The notes under the pieces are model-generated. The model did not search any database. It saw only the letters and a list, made by a program, of their open reading frames with translations, and was not told the DNA's origin. A stretch of DNA of 64,000 nt, taken from the sequence record OP310983.1. The stretch is one strand, 5' to 3'. How positions within the stretch are numbered: position 1 is the first letter of the stretch; each line of letters opens with the position of its first letter. This document shows positions 2,618-60,389 of the stretch, one piece after another. The translations under genes were made by a program, and so were the position numbers.

Positions 2618-3544
2618 ATGCATACTGAACATAGCCTTAAAATCAGTAAAAAGATTAACTTCCTTGTGCAAGTAGAAGCACGTATTAATGAACTATATCA
2701 GCAAAGACAAAATATGTCAATTGATCAATTCTCAAAAGAATTTTTCAATGAATCACCTGATGTAGTTAAACAAGCTATCACTGAGCTATATACAACATAT
2801 CCATTCCAAGATGAAACTAATCCAAAACGGCAAAACCTTCGTTTAGCTATATTTATCCACGATAATGATGTTAGTTGGATTAGTTCAATTCTAGGCGTAG
2901 ATGAATTTAATAATGTTTTAAGGCACGCAGATATTTTTTATAATTATGTTAGTAGTTGCGAGACTGTTGTTCAGCGTAATTATTATGCGTCTTTACCAGA
3001 TTACCGTGGCTACATGTATGCTATCTATGAAGAGGCATTCAACCGCGTTGCCCCACTAGTCAATAAGTATTTAGATATTGATGCACATGACAGTGTTTCA
3101 TTTTTAGAAACACCCCATGTTCTACCAAAAAAGAGTGTATCTATTAAAGATATTATTGATCCATTTGGTCCATATAAACCTAATTACTGTATTAGTGATA
3201 TTTATAGTGCACAAGCTACACAAGTAACAGAAAATACATATATCGCAGTTAATACATTTATCCGTACTGAGGTATATGAAAGACTATGTGCTGAAGGCGA
3301 TACTGTAGATAAGATTGTTATTTCAGATAAACAAAGTATTATTAATGATGAGGATTATATTAAACTAGTCCAAGATAAGATTAATGCATTCCATAAAGAA
3401 ATGGTAGATAATGATTTTATACTTTATGCGCCGTTTAATATGTCCAGGTTAATTTATGTAATGAAGGCTAAATATCCGATTAAAGTTACTATTAGTTGTA
3501 AGGGATTCAAGCATATTGGAAAATTTATTGCTTATAAAAAATAG
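2618..3544 (+). CDS. Hypothetical protein
   Basis: ATG 2618 just after the upstream stop; long ORF in the operon. Confidence 0.75.
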   Translation: MHTEHSLKISKKINFLVQVEARINELYQQRQNMSIDQFSKEFFNESPDVVKQAITELYTTYPFQDETNPKRQNLRLAIFIHDNDVSWISSILGVDEFNNVLRHADIFYNYVSSCETVVQRNYYASLPDYRGYMYAIYEEAFNRVAPLVNKYLDIDAHDSVSFLETPHVLPKKSVSIKDIIDPFGPYKPNYCISDIYSAQATQVTENTYIAVNTFIRTEVYERLCAEGDTVDKIVISDKQSIINDEDYIKLVQDKINAFHKEMVDNDFILYAPFNMSRLIYVMKAKYPIKVTISCKGFKHIGKFIAYKK

Positions 3545-3554
3545 TAGTTTTTAA

Positions 3555-4691
<1,137 letters not shown>

Positions 4692-12736: not shown

Positions 12737-14179
12737 CGTTATGTTCAATAGAGTGCGTTAAACTCTATTCGCACCATTACGTGCAGCTCTAGCTCTCACT
12801 AGAAGACCAGACTATATCTTCACCTACAGCATCATCTGTTTAGGTGCTCTCCATTTCGGATCACTTGATCCTACGGGGCGCAACCCCCTAGTCGTTGAAC
12901 GTTCCACATATTACAGTTAAGTAATTTAGCGGCTTCGCTGCTGATTGTCTCTACCTAATCATTTTCAAACATTCGCACTTACTGTTTCCAGTTATGCTGT
13001 AGTTGATTAGTCTAACGAGAGTTTCCAGCAATTAGAAGAGTAAAACATATTCATTTCGGAATATGTGGACTTATGTACTTTACTGCATAATTTCTAAAAA
13101 TACAACCATGTTCAGATTTCCTTAGATGATAACCTAAGCAACCTGGTGTGACATTGAAAAACTCGGCGGCTTCCTTCAGTGAGTTTTTTATTAATACAGC
13201 TTCAGATTCTAATGATTCAATATGAATTCTGCGATGAGTTTCCACATACACGAGATTATCATTATTCCATGGTGTATCATCATCTTCGTATTTAAACTGT
13301 AATGATTGATTGTAAACAAGATTACTATTTTTAGTTAAACGTAATCTTAAAGTTTCACCATCTATACCAATTTCTCGGGCGCATTGTTCTATGCTGTAAT
13401 AACGAGTTATATTGGTAGTTATAAGGTCTCTGACCAAAACTGCTTTGGAATTATGAAGTCCATTGATGTGCGCATGCTCGCAATTTCTTTTACGGGTAGC
13501 CCATTCAAGGTTTGTTAAATCATTACAATCTTTAATTGCATTTAAATGATTCACATCAAGTGAATCAACATTACCTGGATATTTTAAGAAAGCTAGACTA
13601 AGAAGACGGTGCATTCCTACAATTGTACGTTTACCTACATCCGGCTGAACACCATACATCAGATAACCATCTTCATTCATGTATGGTGAGAGATGATTAC
13701 TGTTAACAGTGCTAAGTACTTGTCCAGCGCGATTAATCATGTATCTACTATATCCGGGAATATAGCAGTATTCTTTTATTAATGGATGAGTAAGTTCACC
13801 TTCAGGACACGCCCAAATAAAATTGGTTAGGCGATGATTACTTTTATTACCGTCTTTGTAAATAACGCGTAGTTTATGTAGTAACCGCATTGGTAATATG
13901 CAGTTTCTATACGTAACACCTAATACAACAGATAGTGACAAACCGTCAAACCATTCACCTGTTGTATGTTCAGGAAAAAGATGTTCGCCTTCATCACTAA
14001 CCATTGTGGTCAGTACGCGTTTACTTATACTTTCTCTAGCGATACCACTACAGCTGATTTCATACATGCCACCAGTATGTGGTATCTTTTTAAATCCTGG
14101 ATTTTCAATGAATTTTTTTAACATGGTTGTTATCCTATTTATTTCCTATAGGATAACTAGATATACAGTATTACAATTA
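12737..14179 (-). mobile_element. Group I intron (1443 nt) with HNH endonuclease in the RNAP beta-prime gene
   Basis: 5' exon ends in U (GAT), intron ends in G; core elements AATTGCTGGAAA (P), AATCAGCAG (Q), TTCAACGACTA (R), AAGATATAGTCT (S) at about 12800-13035; splicing restores GADFDGD. Confidence 0.93.
13051..14124 (-). CDS. Intron-encoded HNH homing endonuclease (gp179-like)
   Basis: NUMOD4-like segments, HRL...DVNHLNAIKDCNDLTNLEW...N HNH motif, C-terminal NUMOD1/IENR1-like HTH repeats. Confidence 0.9.
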   Translation of the reverse strand: MLKKFIENPGFKKIPHTGGMYEISCSGIARESISKRVLTTMVSDEGEHLFPEHTTGEWFDGLSLSVVLGVTYRNCILPMRLLHKLRVIYKDGNKSNHRLTNFIWACPEGELTHPLIKEYCYIPGYSRYMINRAGQVLSTVNSNHLSPYMNEDGYLMYGVQPDVGKRTIVGMHRLLSLAFLKYPGNVDSLDVNHLNAIKDCNDLTNLEWATRKRNCEHAHINGLHNSKAVLVRDLITTNITRYYSIEQCAREIGIDGETLRLRLTKNSNLVYNQSLQFKYEDDDTPWNNDNLVYVETHRRIHIESLESEAVLIKNSLKEAAEFFNVTPGCLGYHLRKSEHGCIFRNYAVKYISPHIPK

Positions 14180-36987: not shown

Positions 36988-39099
36988 TTAAAACCGCATA
37001 TATGCGGGCTGATATGGTTTATACATACGTGTATCAAAGTCATTAAAATCAATTGCGATATCATACTTCTCAAATGATTCTTTTAGCATCTGATAAATGA
37101 TTTTATTTTCATCAAAATTATTATTTTTATCAACATAACTTTCTAATGACTCTGTGATCTCAAATGGAGATTTAATACCCATAATAGCTTCAACCATTGC
37201 CTGACTCCATTTTAGAATGTCATCTGACCTTGTTGAGATATTCGGTTCATCTTCTGTATCGAGAGTACATTGATATACGACTGTTTGTGAATCCTGACCT
37301 TTACGGTAAATTCGAGCAATAGCTTGTTCTAGAATGTAATGCCTAAACGGTGAATTAATTGTCACCATAGTATCAGCCATCGTCATACGGACCGCTGTTG
37401 AAAGGGAAGCATATGTAGCTACCAATGGATTTAATTTAGGGTCTTTCTCAAATCTACTGATTATTTGAGGTAAATTGTCATTGGTTTTACCATACACCAC
37501 CGCCGGATGCATACCTAATTTATTGGTGTACTTATCAACAGTATCAACAACCTCAACAAACGATGTAAATGCAATCGTTTTCTTCATAGTTGATTCAGTG
37601 ATACCAACCCAGTCAATATACGGTACCATGTCCACATGGCACTGAATGCGTTTAGCACCTAAAACCCTTCCCAAACATTCACCTTGTATCTTTAGCATAA
37701 CGTATTTTATAACTGATTTAATATCTCTAAAAGCAGCTATTTCATTACGAGGTAAAGTTGGCTCTATAAACATTTTTTCATATTGGTTAGATTCTTTAAT
37801 TTCTTCACCAATGTATCGCGGGTCTTGATTCTTCTGAATTATTTTAATCAAATTCTTATAGCGAGCGAAACCATCTTTCTGCGCCTGGGTCTTAAGAGAG
37901 TTCTCGTGTATCGCCATTAGTTTAGCCCAATACTTCTCATCTTCTGGTCGGCGCGCAGCATAGAACTTTACACGTTCTCTAATAAAAGCTTCACAATCAC
38001 GTTTAATGGCATTAAGAGTATACTGTGATCCATTTGGTATCTTGATACGATACGCTTTTATCCTCGGTGGTAAAACCTCAGTATCTTTCTTTTCAATGAC
38101 GTACGCAATTAACCCAAAGCGATGTTGGACAATATCTAATCCTTTCTGTGTCTCTTTTCCAAATGCTTTCTTAAAACGTTCTTCAACCTCATTGGTGAAG
38201 AGATCGTCTAATACTCTTAATGCACTTACTAATTCAGAACCAAGTGCTTTAACAGGGGTACCTGACGCTAATAATCTGTTATTAGAGTTAGACATAAAAC
38301 ATATTTGCTGGAACTTAAGAGATTGTGCAGAATTAGGATCGTTCATATTGTGTGATTCATCCAGAATCACCGTAATGTTCTTACCTTTGAATATACCGCT
38401 TCTTAATAGATCAATTATTTTATCTTGCGCCTGGTAATGGGATATAAGTATTCTTTGACCGTTGTAGGCTTTATCATCAATGGTCGACCATACTTTTTGT
38501 CTTTCCTTATACATCTCAATAATAGATGGCTTCCATATTAGATCAATAGACTTCTTTTCACAAACAACTATAATGATATCCGACTCAACCATTTCAGCAA
38601 TAGCCATCGTCATGAATGTCTTACCAGTACCAGGTTTACCTGCAACAATATCACCACGTAAACCATACTGGTCAATTCGATAATTATAATTTTCAAAATA
38701 AGCTTTTTGAGACTCATCTGGTGTAAATGTCAATTTGTCTAACATCTTGAAATTGAGTCTACCTGGTACAGAGTTGGTATCTACAGGACGAGTATTTTTT
38801 AACCAGGTATATTGAAGCATTGCTTCACGGATGGCATTAACAGTTTTAATAGAGATGTATCTACTTCTATAATTCTTTACTGCTTCTAGCATGTAATATA
38901 TTTCAGGAGCAAAGAATTTATAAAATGAAATACTACGACGACTAACCGTGTTAAATAACTGCGTAGCTAATTTAGTGGTTCGCCAATACTTGTTAATATC
39001 TCTAATGAATGCAGCACCATCAAAACCACTGATGATAATTTCTTGATCAGTTTCAGTAATTGATAGCGAGCCCATTAGCTTCCTAAATGAGTCTATCAT
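36988..39099 (-). CDS. SF2 (SNF2-like) helicase (gp203-like)
   Basis: GKPGTGKT, ILDESH, ASGTP, QAIARIYRKGQ motifs. Confidence 0.88.
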   Translation of the reverse strand: MIDSFRKLMGSLSITETDQEIIISGFDGAAFIRDINKYWRTTKLATQLFNTVSRRSISFYKFFAPEIYYMLEAVKNYRSRYISIKTVNAIREAMLQYTWLKNTRPVDTNSVPGRLNFKMLDKLTFTPDESQKAYFENYNYRIDQYGLRGDIVAGKPGTGKTFMTMAIAEMVESDIIIVVCEKKSIDLIWKPSIIEMYKERQKVWSTIDDKAYNGQRILISHYQAQDKIIDLLRSGIFKGKNITVILDESHNMNDPNSAQSLKFQQICFMSNSNNRLLASGTPVKALGSELVSALRVLDDLFTNEVEERFKKAFGKETQKGLDIVQHRFGLIAYVIEKKDTEVLPPRIKAYRIKIPNGSQYTLNAIKRDCEAFIRERVKFYAARRPEDEKYWAKLMAIHENSLKTQAQKDGFARYKNLIKIIQKNQDPRYIGEEIKESNQYEKMFIEPTLPRNEIAAFRDIKSVIKYVMLKIQGECLGRVLGAKRIQCHVDMVPYIDWVGITESTMKKTIAFTSFVEVVDTVDKYTNKLGMHPAVVYGKTNDNLPQIISRFEKDPKLNPLVATYASLSTAVRMTMADTMVTINSPFRHYILEQAIARIYRKGQDSQTVVYQCTLDTEDEPNISTRSDDILKWSQAMVEAIMGIKSPFEITESLESYVDKNNNFDENKIIYQMLKESFEKYDIAIDFNDFDTRMYKPYQPAYMRF

Positions 39100-39169
39100 T
39101 GCATTTTTCCTTAAGGGGTATGTAAATATAACTCTAAGTCATAAGATTAGCTAACGAATAAAAATACGC

Positions 39170-39367
39170 ACAGTGCAATGATATAGAGCAAGGCAGTTTG
39201 CGTAAAACGCACTGCACTTTAAGGGGGTGATCCAGTCGTAAATAAACCGGGGTACTAAAGTATCGTCAGGAACGACACGAACCCCAACTACGGTGCCTTG
39301 CTACTCACCGACCTCTAGATAGGGGTCGGACCTATTACATTAAAGGAGCCCACCAGGGGCTCCTTTA
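39170..39367 (+). ncRNA. Candidate structured non-coding RNA
   Basis: GC-enriched ORF-free island with nested helices, ending in a terminator (see findings). Confidence 0.45.
39341..39367 (+). terminator. Hairpin terminator
   Basis: TAAAGGAGCCC-ACCAG-GGGCTCCTTTA. Confidence 0.75.
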
Positions 39368-39380
39368 TGCCATTCATTAT

Positions 39381-39403
39381 AAATTAATTTAAATCTATAT
39401 TAC
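39381..39403 (+). promoter_or_regulatory. phiKZ-type early promoter
   Basis: AAATTAATTTAAATC-TATATTAC (39396-39403). Confidence 0.75.
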
Positions 39404-39449
39404 AGGATTACCATAAAGATATTTATCCTTTTATAATGAGGAAAAGATT

Positions 39450-39845
39450 ATGTCCGATATTAATAGCACCAATGTAACAGATGAATTAGTACCTTATTTT
39501 CCATCGGCGGGTGCCATTACTAGTTCTACTATTAGGGATGAAGTAATTCCTAATATTTTGTTATTCTACAAGAATGCTTTTAGTGACTTCCAACACGTTA
39601 GTAATATCACAGGTACTAACCAGATTGCATCAGGTTATTTACCAGGTGTAGGTTATTATTTCGAGTATAGTGTTACCGGTAATGCTAATCTTATTCCACC
39701 TGAAGCAATTAAAGTATTACGTAATGTAATCACTAAAAATGGATATAAAGATGACATTACCATCACACCAAAAGGTTTTGGCCTAATCAATTGGTTCATT
39801 GTAAGAGTATACGTAGATGAGCAAATTAAGAAGACTACTCAATAA
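39450..39845 (+). CDS. Early hypothetical protein
   Basis: 131 aa, GAGG SD. Confidence 0.75.
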   Translation: MSDINSTNVTDELVPYFPSAGAITSSTIRDEVIPNILLFYKNAFSDFQHVSNITGTNQIASGYLPGVGYYFEYSVTGNANLIPPEAIKVLRNVITKNGYKDDITITPKGFGLINWFIVRVYVDEQIKKTTQ

Positions 39846-58136: not shown

Positions 58137-59299
58137 TGGAACAATATCTTAATTCAATCCGTTTAGTTAAAGAACACGGTGTACATAAAGGTGACCGTAC
58201 TGGTACTGGTACTCAGAGCATGTTTGGTCAACAAGAACGTTATAGTCTGCGTAATAATCGGCTACCAGTTGTAACCACCAAGAAGATTCATCTAGCTTCT
58301 GTAATTCATGAATTGTTCTGGATGCTGTCAGGTGATACTAAGGTGGATTACCTGATCGCTAATGGTGTACGCATCTGGAACGAGTGGGTTAAACCTGAAA
58401 CCGCAGTATATGAGCCGATGACCGATGAGGCCGTTCTTAAAGCAGTAACTGCCCTCATTGGTGCCCCATTCGTAATGTACTTACATTGTATGAACGATGA
58501 CTCTACTCCATTCATTGAGACTGTAGCGGAATTCGAGTCGGGTATGACTCCAGAGACTATTCAGGCCTTCTGGGATGAATATCCAGTTAACCGTGAGGAA
58601 ATCCAATACATCATTGGAGTTAGCGTAACGTCGTGGAATAGGTTCGCTACTGAAGGGTTCGATGAAGCCAAAAATCCTGAAGGTATTCGTGCTGAATATA
58701 ACAAGCGACTGTATCGTGCTTTGATGCATAAAGAACCAGAGCGTCTGGTCGGCGGCGATCTAGGTGCTGTTTACGGTAAGACATGGCGTAATCTTGAAGA
58801 CACTCGTGTAATCCCTAAATATGAGTGGTTTGATTATGAGAAGCGTGGTTTTGACTTCGTGGCGGATATCCCAGGTACAACCATGGAAACCGATCGATGC
58901 GTGGTTACTCGACGTATCGACCAAATCCAAGACATCATCGATCAACTTCGCACCAACCCGGATTCTCGTCGGATCATTGTTTGTGCATGGGCGCCACATC
59001 TTATTGATGAGCAGGCACTCCCACCTTGCCACGCATTTATTCAGTTCTGGACCCGTGAACTGACCGTAGATGAACGAGTGCAAGCTCTAGACCAAACCCA
59101 GTTCGAAGCTGATGCTTATCATGATAAGATTAGTGGTGAGATTACTCGTGGTCAACCTCCATTCGATAGTGCTGAGCAGGTTAAAGCACTTCTGCGTGTC
59201 TGTCGTGGTTATGAAAAGGCTACAGATGAAGCAGTAGTAGAATGGCTGGATCAACATGGTGTTCCTAAACGTGCATTGAGTTGCCAACTCTACCAGCGT
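58136..59299 (+). CDS. thyA: Thymidylate synthase, exon 1
   Basis: DRTGTGT, LPVVTTKKIH, GDLGAVYG, ALPPCHAFIQF, LSCQLYQR then in-frame TAA. Confidence 0.95.
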
Positions 59300-60389
59300 T
59301 AAATACTAGCGCCTTCTAGGAGCAATCCTAGTCGAATAACCTATCTAAACGGGGAAACTCTCTATGAGACAATCCCGTGCTAAATTGACTACGGTCATAA
59401 ATGCCTAACGACTATCGAAACCACTCTGAGAAGAGGAAGGGAGTAGAGTAGGACCAAGTGGTCCGAAAAGGTAGGGGTCTCTTTTTAAGAGATCGTGATA
59501 TAGTCTGTCCTGCATGGAGACATGCAGCGGTTTACTTAATGACTCCGCCAGATAAGGAGGGTGTTATTAATGACGTAGCTTATGTGTATTGCCTATTCAC
59601 CAAAGAAGGAAAGGTATATGTCGGAAGTGCGCGAGATTTAGTTAAGCGCGTTCAACGACATTTCAGAGACCTTAGTAATTCCAAGCACCATAACTACCCA
59701 TTACAACAAGAATACGATAACGGTGAAAGATTCTCGTTAAAGTACTATCGTTGTGAAAGTCGGGAATCAGCATTTACACTCGAACAGATGTGGATAACCA
59801 AGCATGAAGAAGAAGGTAACCTTCTTAATATTGGTAGACACTCCAAGGGTGGTGATAACTTAACCAGGCATAACCTCAAAGAACAAATCATCGAGAAGCG
59901 GAGTGATACAATACGTATCAGACTTGATGAGATTGGAGCCGAGGCTCGTCAGGAAAAGTATGGTCGACCAGGTGAGCAGAATGGGATGTATGGTCGTACT
60001 CACACAGAAGAAGTTAAGGTAGCTCTATCCGAGTTACACACGGGTAACACTTACCGTCTTGGCATTAAAGCTAGTGATGAGACAAGAGCCAGGATGTCGG
60101 AGATAGCTTCTCAGAGAACAGGCGAACGTAATCCATTCTACGGTAAAACACATTCCGAAGAAACCAGAAAAAAGTTGGCGGATAACAAACGCGGTATAAA
60201 GCCAACTAACTCAAACAAACTTGAAGTGGACGGTGTTGTTTATTTATCCCAGGCCGATGCAGCTAAGGCTCTCGGAGTATCACAGGGTACAATAACATAC
60301 CGAATTAACAGCAAGAATCCAAAGTATTCTGGTTATAAAGTCATTTAAGTAAACGGCTCAGGATTAACGACCCTGGGTGAACATAAGAG
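59300..60389 (+). mobile_element. T4 td-like group I intron (1090 nt) with GIY-YIG endonuclease
   Basis: CTATCTAAACGGGGAA..CTCTCTA..AGACAATCCCGTGCTAAATTG, AAATGCCTAACGACTATC, GATATAGTCTG..CTGCATGG.GACATGCAG, GATTAACGACC...TGAACATAA..G; exon ends in U, intron ends in G. Confidence 0.93.
59539..60348 (+). CDS. Intron-encoded GIY-YIG homing endonuclease (start uncertain)
   Basis: AYVY...VYVGS...R...H...E...LN; NUMOD3 repeats GEQNGMYGRTHTEE and GERNPFYGKTHSEET; C-terminal HTH. Confidence 0.88.
   Translation: MTPPDKEGVINDVAYVYCLFTKEGKVYVGSARDLVKRVQRHFRDLSNSKHHNYPLQQEYDNGERFSLKYYRCESRESAFTLEQMWITKHEEEGNLLNIGRHSKGGDNLTRHNLKEQIIEKRSDTIRIRLDEIGAEARQEKYGRPGEQNGMYGRTHTEEVKVALSELHTGNTYRLGIKASDETRARMSEIASQRTGERNPFYGKTHSEETRKKLADNKRGIKPTNSNKLEVDGVVYLSQADAAKALGVSQGTITYRINSKNPKYSGYKVI

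Follow-up and report, generated by a model that had tools for sequence, protein, structure and literature searches.

A conserved structured RNA of phiKZ-related jumbo phages carrying a complement of the 16S rRNA 3' end

What occupies a GC-rich gap between two genes of the Pseudomonas phage phiKZ, and what might it do? phiKZ is the model among nucleus-forming jumbo phages, and the way in which it turns host ribosomes to its own use is still an open question. We analyzed a stretch of 64,000 nucleotides of sequence record OP310983.1 (the window; positions below are window positions, and adding 173668 gives the phiKZ position). The source is phiKZ: 351 bases around the element are 100% identical to NC_004629 212768-213118. 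The element lies in a 350-nt gap (39100-39449) that holds no open reading frame (ORF) of at least 30 amino acids. GC content is 0.50-0.51 across 39200-39349, compared with 0.27-0.37 in the flanks, as an earlier prediction from the letters alone had noted. That original prediction read the region as a stand-alone transcript, either a regulatory or decoy RNA or a ribozyme. We conclude with high confidence that the locus is a real, conserved gene for a structured non-coding RNA (ncRNA). Its most conserved part is complementary to the 3' end of 16S ribosomal RNA (rRNA).

A conserved fold in a family of jumbo-phage sequences

The + strand of the element folds at -75.3 kcal/mol, while dinucleotide shuffles reach -55.0 +/- 4.5 kcal/mol (z = -4.5); none of 200 shuffles folds as well. 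The rise in GC, the presence of the pairings listed in the original prediction and a fold 4.5 standard deviations better than that of shuffles indicate that the structure is more than chance. Read from 5' to 3', the element begins with a promoter-like motif and the 5' strand of helix P1. Hairpin P2 comes next, and a long junction leads on to the P3-P5 arm; junction J3/1, the 3' strand of P1, hairpin P6 and a predicted terminator complete the layout. The folded parts, with counts taken over the family alignment described below, are as follows.

39187-39194, + strand: 5' strand of P1, which pairs with 39295-39302 and closes the core; 96% of alignment cells paired, five of six pairs changed on both sides
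39195-39213, + strand: hairpin P2, outer AG...CU and inner UGCGU/ACGCA; four of five pairs compensatory
39220-39237, + strand: D block of the junction, UAAGGGGGUGAUCCAGUC, complementary to 16S rRNA 1542-1525; invariant core at 39222-39234
39249-39285, + strand: P3-P5 arm, with P3 (GGGGU/ACCCC), an internal loop (ACUAAA opposite GA) and P5 (GU-A-UCGU/ACGA-C-AC, loop CAGGA)
39286-39294, + strand: junction J3/1, AACUACGGU, in which ACGG is nearly invariant
39295-39302, + strand: 3' strand of P1, partner of 39187-39194
39307-39330, + strand: hairpin P6, found with differing stem sequences in every member of the Pseudomonas clade and absent from the distant clade

Searches with blastn recovered the phiKZ stretch unaltered in about 45 phiKZ-type isolates, and parts of it at 70-85% identity in PhiPA3, Phabio, 201phi2-1 and the PA1C group, which are far more distant jumbo phages of Pseudomonas. 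A covariance model made from eight sequences, together with refined pattern scans of viral and metagenome collections, brought in Psa21 as well as 14 uncultured contigs, of which eight are large phage contigs of 73-317 kb and six measure 1.7-28 kb. The initial pattern (CTGC...D block) was unspecific, returning more than 120 matches that were mostly ordinary strong ribosome-binding sites, and was refined three times. The contigs with enough flanking DNA encode homologues of the phiKZ proteins gp199, gp201, gp203, gp207 or gp208, and are therefore chimalliviruses. The covariance model gave no score to any of the 26 pattern matches from bacterial genomes. With filters off, the model also gave no match above chance in the surroundings of the helicase gene, the phiKZ neighbour of the element, in the distant chimalliviruses Goslar, RTH11, RP12, pEa_SNUABM_54, OBP and EL; a single-protein search with the helicase recovered solely phiKZ-type contigs. 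As far as seen, the family appears to consist of the phiKZ/PhiPA3/201phi2-1/Phabio/Psa21 lineage and a higher-GC uncultured sister clade.

The original prediction had proposed conservation and covariation in related phages as its check, and both are found. In the family alignment of 25 distinct sequences, which was fitted to the covariance model and is thereby biased towards structure, standard pairs occupy 93.6% of cells, compared with 70.8 +/- 1.2 in shuffles (none of 500 as high) and 25-45% with slid partners; compensatory changes on both sides are present in 21 of the 23 pairs (an earlier covariation count used 21 sequences). The raw sequences show such changes plainly. P3 is GGGGU/ACCCC in phiKZ, GAUAC/GUAUC in PA1C, GGUAC/GUACC in 201phi2-1, and GGAACG/CGUUCC or GGAGUG/CACUCC in the sister clade, and P2 alternates between GCAGU/ACUGC and GUACU/AGUAC (the latter in L229 and L230; L numbers are our handles for the loci). 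In the helices of the P3-P5 arm all 12 pairs are compensatory, with 89-98% of cells paired.

Most of the pairings first proposed for phiKZ are borne out by these variants. Covariation supports the long-range helix between AGCAAGGCA (39187-95) and TGCCTTGCT (39294-302), which is P1, the TGCGT-AAA-ACGCA hairpin (39199-39211) with its GCAG/CTGC extension, the pairing of GGGGT (39249-53) with ACCCC (39281-85), and the TCGT-CAGGA-ACGA hairpin (39263-75). The CCGACC..GGTCGG hairpin is likewise present, at 39308-29. A helix of GTCGTA (39235-40) and TACGGT (39289-94) exists in phiKZ and is pairable in most relatives, and it shows no covariation; the same is true of a possible 3-bp pairing of the ACGG of J3/1 with the D block's 3' edge, which is also pairable. 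The proposed alternative pairing of CAGTGC with GCACTG, read as a switch or pseudoknot, is not supported: it draws on bases from before the likely start of transcription, which relatives do not conserve. Two computed pairings were rejected as well. The GGGGG/ACCCC pairing of the minimum-free-energy fold is not conserved, and a weak CUGC/GGGG hairpin from RNAalifold falls in near-invariant columns, the sole variable column showing a one-sided change, with one G-G mismatch.

Several unpaired parts also recur. The internal loop of the P3-P5 arm reads NNUAAA opposite GA throughout the Pseudomonas clade, and the P5 loop is G-N-G-A-like in all sequences, with the GA invariant. In the Pseudomonas clade a CUAU(U)CUAA-like motif recurs in the P6 loop (39314-39322); this motif and the G-N-G-A loops of P5 may be tertiary-contact partners. 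Separately, J3/1 and the 3' strand of P1 (CUACGG-UGCCUUG..ACGACU; window 39289-39308, L002 2684-2703) resemble antisense 16S sequence near the 1492R primer site. Between 1 and 5 of 500 shuffles score as high, and the likeness is significant in the PA1C and phiKZ types only, not family-wide; it might be a remnant of an antisense ribosomal DNA origin, or chance.

Comparison with known RNA classes returned no match. Rfam 15, searched at 39050-39480, gave nothing at the gathering threshold and solely chance-level matches of at most 18 bits at E up to 10, and the homologous loci of six other phages also lacked an Rfam match. The RNA family is new to Rfam. Nothing points to a ribozyme, one of the functions first suggested. 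ARAGORN found no tRNA or tmRNA gene in the whole window. The combination of compensatory substitutions with the absence of a conserved reading frame fits a structured ncRNA in general.

Complementarity to the 3' end of 16S rRNA

A single stretch, AGGNGGUGAUCCA in the P2-P3 junction, is invariant among the 25 sequences. It was missed by the original prediction, whose idea of a regulatory or decoy RNA can now be made concrete because this unpaired stretch complements the 16S 3' end. Opposite 16S positions 1528-1541 the bases are pairable in all 25 sequences, and opposite 1525-1527 in 24 of them. Pairability falls to 17 of 25 at 1542 on one side and to 9-11 of 25 at 1523-1524 on the other, which gives the complementarity sharp limits at 1541 and 1525. 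Three D-block positions vary, A/G opposite U1537 and U1541 and C/U opposite G1526, and pairing is retained in all cases. The block forms 17-18 contiguous pairs with 16S, and the predicted duplex has a stability of -33 to -37 kcal/mol (phiKZ -33.5; Phabio -26.6), compared with -9 to -13 kcal/mol for ordinary Shine-Dalgarno (SD) sites of the GGAGG type. Across both strands of the window (128 kb), the D block is the top run of 16S complementarity, at 20 nt, and the next-best run has 12 nt. Its 17-mer is one base off the universal 16S reverse primer rD1, AAGGAGGTGATCCAGCC. The 16S 3' end of E. coli was verified in 5426 of 5426 genomes. Within the RNA itself the D block has no conserved intramolecular partner. 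We give about an even chance that pairing with 16S is the working mechanism of the RNA.

A perfect SD sequence raises the question of translation. That the RNA is a small mRNA, with the D block as the ribosome-binding site of a micro-ORF, is hardly credible: an ATG, GTG or TTG is absent from the interval 4-15 nt past the block in 15 of 19 members, no ORF is conserved across the 19, and substitutions in the family track base pairing, not codons.

The D block is in effect an idealized ribosome-binding site, and GGA-containing motifs are typical targets of regulators that bind such sites. Its seed pairing or binding could be meant for another partner: an mRNA of the phage or the host, or an RNA-binding protein, either of the Rsm/CsrA type or encoded by the phage; the RNA would then be a decoy for factors that recognize ribosome-binding sites, and the 16S match a by-product. 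Contact with the ribosome is, after all, read from the sequence of the block. We consider this alternative improbable in view of how far the conservation extends. It runs past the GGAGG core through UGAUCCAGYC and has edges that match 16S exactly, none of which a protein that binds ribosome-binding sites would need. There is also no second site complementary to the D block in the 64-kb window.

A further alternative retains the contact with 16S and gives it a lesser role. In the STAB-SD of the Bacillus thuringiensis cry3A gene, an untranslated, SD-like sequence binds the 16S 3' end, holds the 30S subunit on the RNA and stabilizes the mRNA without initiating translation (PMC4113751). The D block could similarly be a mere protective landing pad for 30S subunits, a shield against ribonucleases, while the true function, for example protein binding, resides in the P3-P5 arm, its G-N-G-A loop or P6. 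The elaborate conserved fold would fit this, as the loop type and the internal loop suggest a protein or tertiary contact. However, no other part of the RNA comes near the D block in conservation; the others keep their shape and not their sequence, and the 17 nt of the block go far beyond the need of a stabilizer. STAB-SD moreover counters the 5'-to-3' exonuclease RNase J1, and to our knowledge Pseudomonas has no RNase J1. We regard a purely protective role as unlikely, and pairing with 16S as the working mechanism remains our preferred reading of the D block.

Transcript boundaries, strand and gene neighbourhood

The RNA is flanked by signals that suggest a transcription unit of its own:

39157-39186, + strand: promoter-like region, an A-rich run and TAC (39160-39167), 14 nt, then TATAG (39182-39186)
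39186-39369, + strand: predicted RNA of ~180 nt, bounded by the promoter-like motif and the terminator
39342-39369, + strand: predicted terminator hairpin, AAAGGAGCCC-ACCAG-GGGCUCCUUU, followed by AUG

All members of the Pseudomonas clade have an A-rich run, TAC(T), a spacer of ~13-15 nt and TATAG upstream of the element. In phiKZ, AAAAATACG stands 19-20 nt upstream of the presumed start G39186 and is kept in relatives; the window has just 3 sites with the combined motif. The published middle promoter of phiKZ has TACT ~22 nt upstream of the start, with an A-rich repeat before it (PMC8244752). In the sister clade TATG is found directly at the start of P1 instead of TATAG; TATG is the initiator of the phage non-virion RNA polymerase (nvRNAP) at late promoters, its G being +1 (PMC4666361). 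By analogy with this TATG, transcription likely starts at G39186. The corresponding unit in relatives measures 137-188 nt.

At the other end, a 10-bp GC-rich hairpin (39342-66) is followed by a UUUAUG tail. A GC-rich hairpin followed by (U)UUAUG is kept in all members, with differing, covarying stem sequences. The original prediction had called this a strong terminator; the hairpin is there as described, and the consensus terminator scan made no call on it because the UUUAUG tail is too U-poor for the rule of the scan. The sole call of the consensus promoter and terminator scan, whose scope does not include the phiKZ polymerases, is a sigma-70-like site just upstream of PHIKZ204. The sequence (U)UAUG(C/U)C always directly follows the terminator, and in several members its UAUG pairs with CAUA or GUAU just upstream of the terminator stem.

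The helices contain 33 G-U cells, which, together with the orientation of the promoter-like motif and of the U-tail, favour the + strand. The minus strand also folds well (z = -3.6), and in phiKZ, PA1C, Psa21, L020 and L171 the element is divergent from the helicase gene and abuts its start. The active molecule could then be the 5' leader of the helicase mRNA, or the conservation could act on DNA, as a shared promoter region or a protein site. We find both very unlikely. On the opposite strand the G-U cells would turn into A-C mismatches, the U-tailed terminators and promoter-like motif belong to the + strand, and the compensatory changes indicate a folded single strand. Nor is the association with the helicase start constant: PhiPA3 has the unit in the inverse orientation, co-directional with the helicase, and a distance of 0.7-1.6 kb separates the two in 201phi2-1, Phabio, L107 and L176, with small ORFs intervening in both annotated phages.

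The genes on either side of the element in phiKZ are:

36988-39099, - strand: PHIKZ203, a helicase of SF2/SNF2 type annotated as a virion protein, with the Pfam families ResIII, SNF2-rel_dom and Helicase_C
39450-39845, + strand: PHIKZ204, without a Pfam family

Most members of the family adjoin a homologue of the gp203 helicase, and the element always lies within an ORF-free gap, which in the PA1C group, PhiPA3, Phabio and 201phi2-1 is 260-320 nt long and close to the helicase homologue. The downstream gene varies in nearly every genus: in phiKZ it is PHIKZ204 and in PhiPA3 the helicase, PA1C has a convergent virion gene there, and Phabio and 201phi2-1 have small ORFs that are unrelated. This variation, the changing orientation to the helicase, and the element's own promoter-like motif and predicted terminator indicate that it is an independent unit, not the leader of a neighbour. 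Together with the compensatory changes in the 25 sequences, they agree with the stand-alone, structured and non-coding + strand unit that had been proposed.

The same observations bear on a cis-acting leader, an attenuator- or riboswitch-like element that would govern read-through into the downstream gene, PHIKZ204 in phiKZ. A predicted terminator does lie between the element and PHIKZ204, and Putzeys et al. found that many phiKZ 5'-UTR (untranslated region) transcripts are ended by conditional terminators (PMC10914365). Such a role is nonetheless quite unlikely, as the downstream neighbour is not conserved, no anti-terminator pairing is conserved, and six members have a separate CTATATTAC promoter-like motif after the terminator. 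Assignment to a riboswitch or attenuator class was rejected on the varying neighbours, the unconserved alternative pairing and the lack of covariation in the helix next to the D block. The CTATATTAC motif stands between terminator and next gene at 39395-39403 in the window and also follows the terminators of Phabio (L004), L020, Psa21 (L163), L228 and L235; it is probably an early-type promoter of the next gene itself. PHIKZ204 is preceded by an SD site, GAGGA.

Several features of the surroundings were observed in passing. In PhiPA3, PA1C and SL2 the homologues of the gp203 helicase are interrupted by ~0.8-1.0 kb (L003 ~3221-4246 in PhiPA3, L002 ~985-2015 in PA1C, 74235-77165 in the SL2 record). 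Their tblastn matches come in two pieces, and PA1C is annotated with two coding sequences (CDSs). The break follows residue 158-160 in PhiPA3 and PA1C, where Rfam finds no intron; the interruption may be an intein or mobile insertion. In Goslar, a phage of E. coli, the syntenic gap upstream of the helicase (L164:19793-20000) has a TAC..ATATAG motif and an annotated + strand terminator, and contains neither a 16S-complementary block nor a model match. It may encode an unrelated small transcript at the equivalent place. Elsewhere in the window, the whole-window Rfam scan detected, as its only hits, two group I catalytic introns (RF00028), at 12787-13109 on the minus strand (90 bits) and 59290-59527 on the + strand (69 bits).

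In the record of HPP-Temi (PP968062; L159:440-858), three tiny minus-strand CDSs (96, 90 and 147 nt) have been placed at this locus. The RNA gene is covered by the first two, while the third overlaps the terminator and extends past it; they are probably spurious gene calls. As some records place such CDSs over the RNA gene, the locus merits annotation.

A proposed mechanism and its relation to known systems

From these features we infer a chain of steps that leads from transcription and cytoplasmic export to ribosome binding and an effect on translation. A phage-encoded RNA polymerase would probably make the ncRNA, using a middle-type promoter with its start near G39186, and the transcript would probably end at the hairpin at 39342-66. 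It would fold into a three-way core closed by P1, with the P2 hairpin and the P3-P5 arm with its G-N-G-A cap, followed by P6 and the terminator. The 17-nt stretch left unpaired in the P2-P3 junction, a Watson-Crick and wobble complement of 16S 1525-1541, that is, of the anti-SD tail and the base of helix 45, could then pair in trans with the 16S 3' end. In this way the RNA would fill the mRNA-docking site of the 30S subunit without being translated, like an mRNA but through a longer duplex. The most likely consequence would be that 30S subunits are titrated, blocked or re-targeted in middle and late infection, with a shift in which mRNAs initiate. The targets might be mature subunits, or immature 30S subunits in which helix 45 is still open.

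Several points weigh against this mechanism. In mature 30S subunits only ~13 nt (1530-1542) are free at the 16S end; pairing at 1525-1529 requires the base of helix 45 to open, and so immature subunits might be the target. At position 1527 Pseudomonas 16S presumably has C instead of U, as taken from the rD1 primer. Thermodynamic folding of the single sequence gives the D block a mean unpaired probability of 0.46, compared with 0.39 for the whole RNA. The RNA would have to be exported, because its synthesis would take place in the phage nucleus, which excludes ribosomes. If 30S subunits were blocked indiscriminately, the phage too would suffer, as its own mRNAs also use SD sites. The known hosts all have an identical 16S end, which precludes a natural test of co-variation between RNA and target. 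Finally, the supplements of the Grad-seq study do not mention the locus.

Taking both sides together, we judge the odds evenly balanced that the element encodes a phage RNA of its own, which binds the anti-SD tail of the 30S subunit by pairing in trans. The fuller proposal, in which 14-20 nt of the 16S 3' end pair in trans with a viral RNA, a natural 'anti-anti-Shine-Dalgarno' RNA that would occupy or re-program host 30S subunits, is put forward more tentatively, as something short of an even chance.

If the pairing with 16S is true, this would be the first example known to us of a phage that targets the ribosome with an RNA, and a new, RNA-based route of translation takeover. Only proteins, for example PHIKZ014, have been implicated to date in the redirection of ribosomes by phiKZ (PMC10914614). 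Even if the ribosome idea fails, the locus defines a new covariation-supported RNA family in five named groups of Pseudomonas jumbo phages and their uncultured relatives.

Short, structured, terminator-bounded intergenic candidates for small RNAs (sRNAs) were reported by Grad-seq and ONT-cappable-seq of phiKZ and 201phi2-1, one of which, upstream of gp182/gp277, is conserved between genera (PMC8545117, PMC10914365, PMC11512511). The element described here is likewise short, structured, intergenic and bounded by a predicted terminator, and comes from the same phages. None of the candidates in the main texts lies at this locus, however, and no function, 16S complementarity or covariation-tested fold is reported for them. 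Neither the locus nor a 16S-complementary RNA is mentioned in the main texts of the phiKZ dRNA-seq, Grad-seq and ONT-cappable-seq studies, the 201phi2-1 transcriptome, a 2025 review of jumbo phages and papers on ribosome targeting and antisense oligomers; a supplementary table of 17 unnamed phiKZ 5'-UTR candidates may include the locus. There appears to be no earlier report of a phage RNA that has a 17-nt complement of the 16S end at its centre.

STAB-SD is the nearest known mechanism. It shares with the phage element a non-initiating SD-like sequence complementary to the 16S 3' end, and in the phage family, too, most members (15 of 19) have no start codon at working distance. STAB-SD, however, is a short motif that acts in cis in the leader of a protein-coding mRNA, whereas the phage element presents 17 nt within an ORF-free three-way-junction RNA with its own promoter-like motif and terminator. 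Since its predicted terminator precedes any ORF and the downstream genes vary among phages, the element does not qualify as an mRNA leader and falls outside the STAB-SD class. Sponges such as RsmY/RsmZ and those of the CsrB type are similar in that an ncRNA presents unpaired purine motifs, resembling ribosome-binding sites, to capture a factor that meets mRNA. They do so with many short, protein-binding GGA loops, while the phage RNA, which has no Rfam match, offers one long site whose length and edges match rRNA.

The closest likeness in sequence is to rD1-type primers and anti-SD antisense oligomers. Oligomers complementary to the 16S 3' end bind the anti-SD tail. The D block has the same sequence save for one A-to-G change that is kept as a G-U wobble. 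The oligomers are man-made, whereas the D block is natural, genetically encoded and embedded in a folded RNA; if it does pair with 16S, the phage RNA would be the natural counterpart of anti-SD antisense oligomers.

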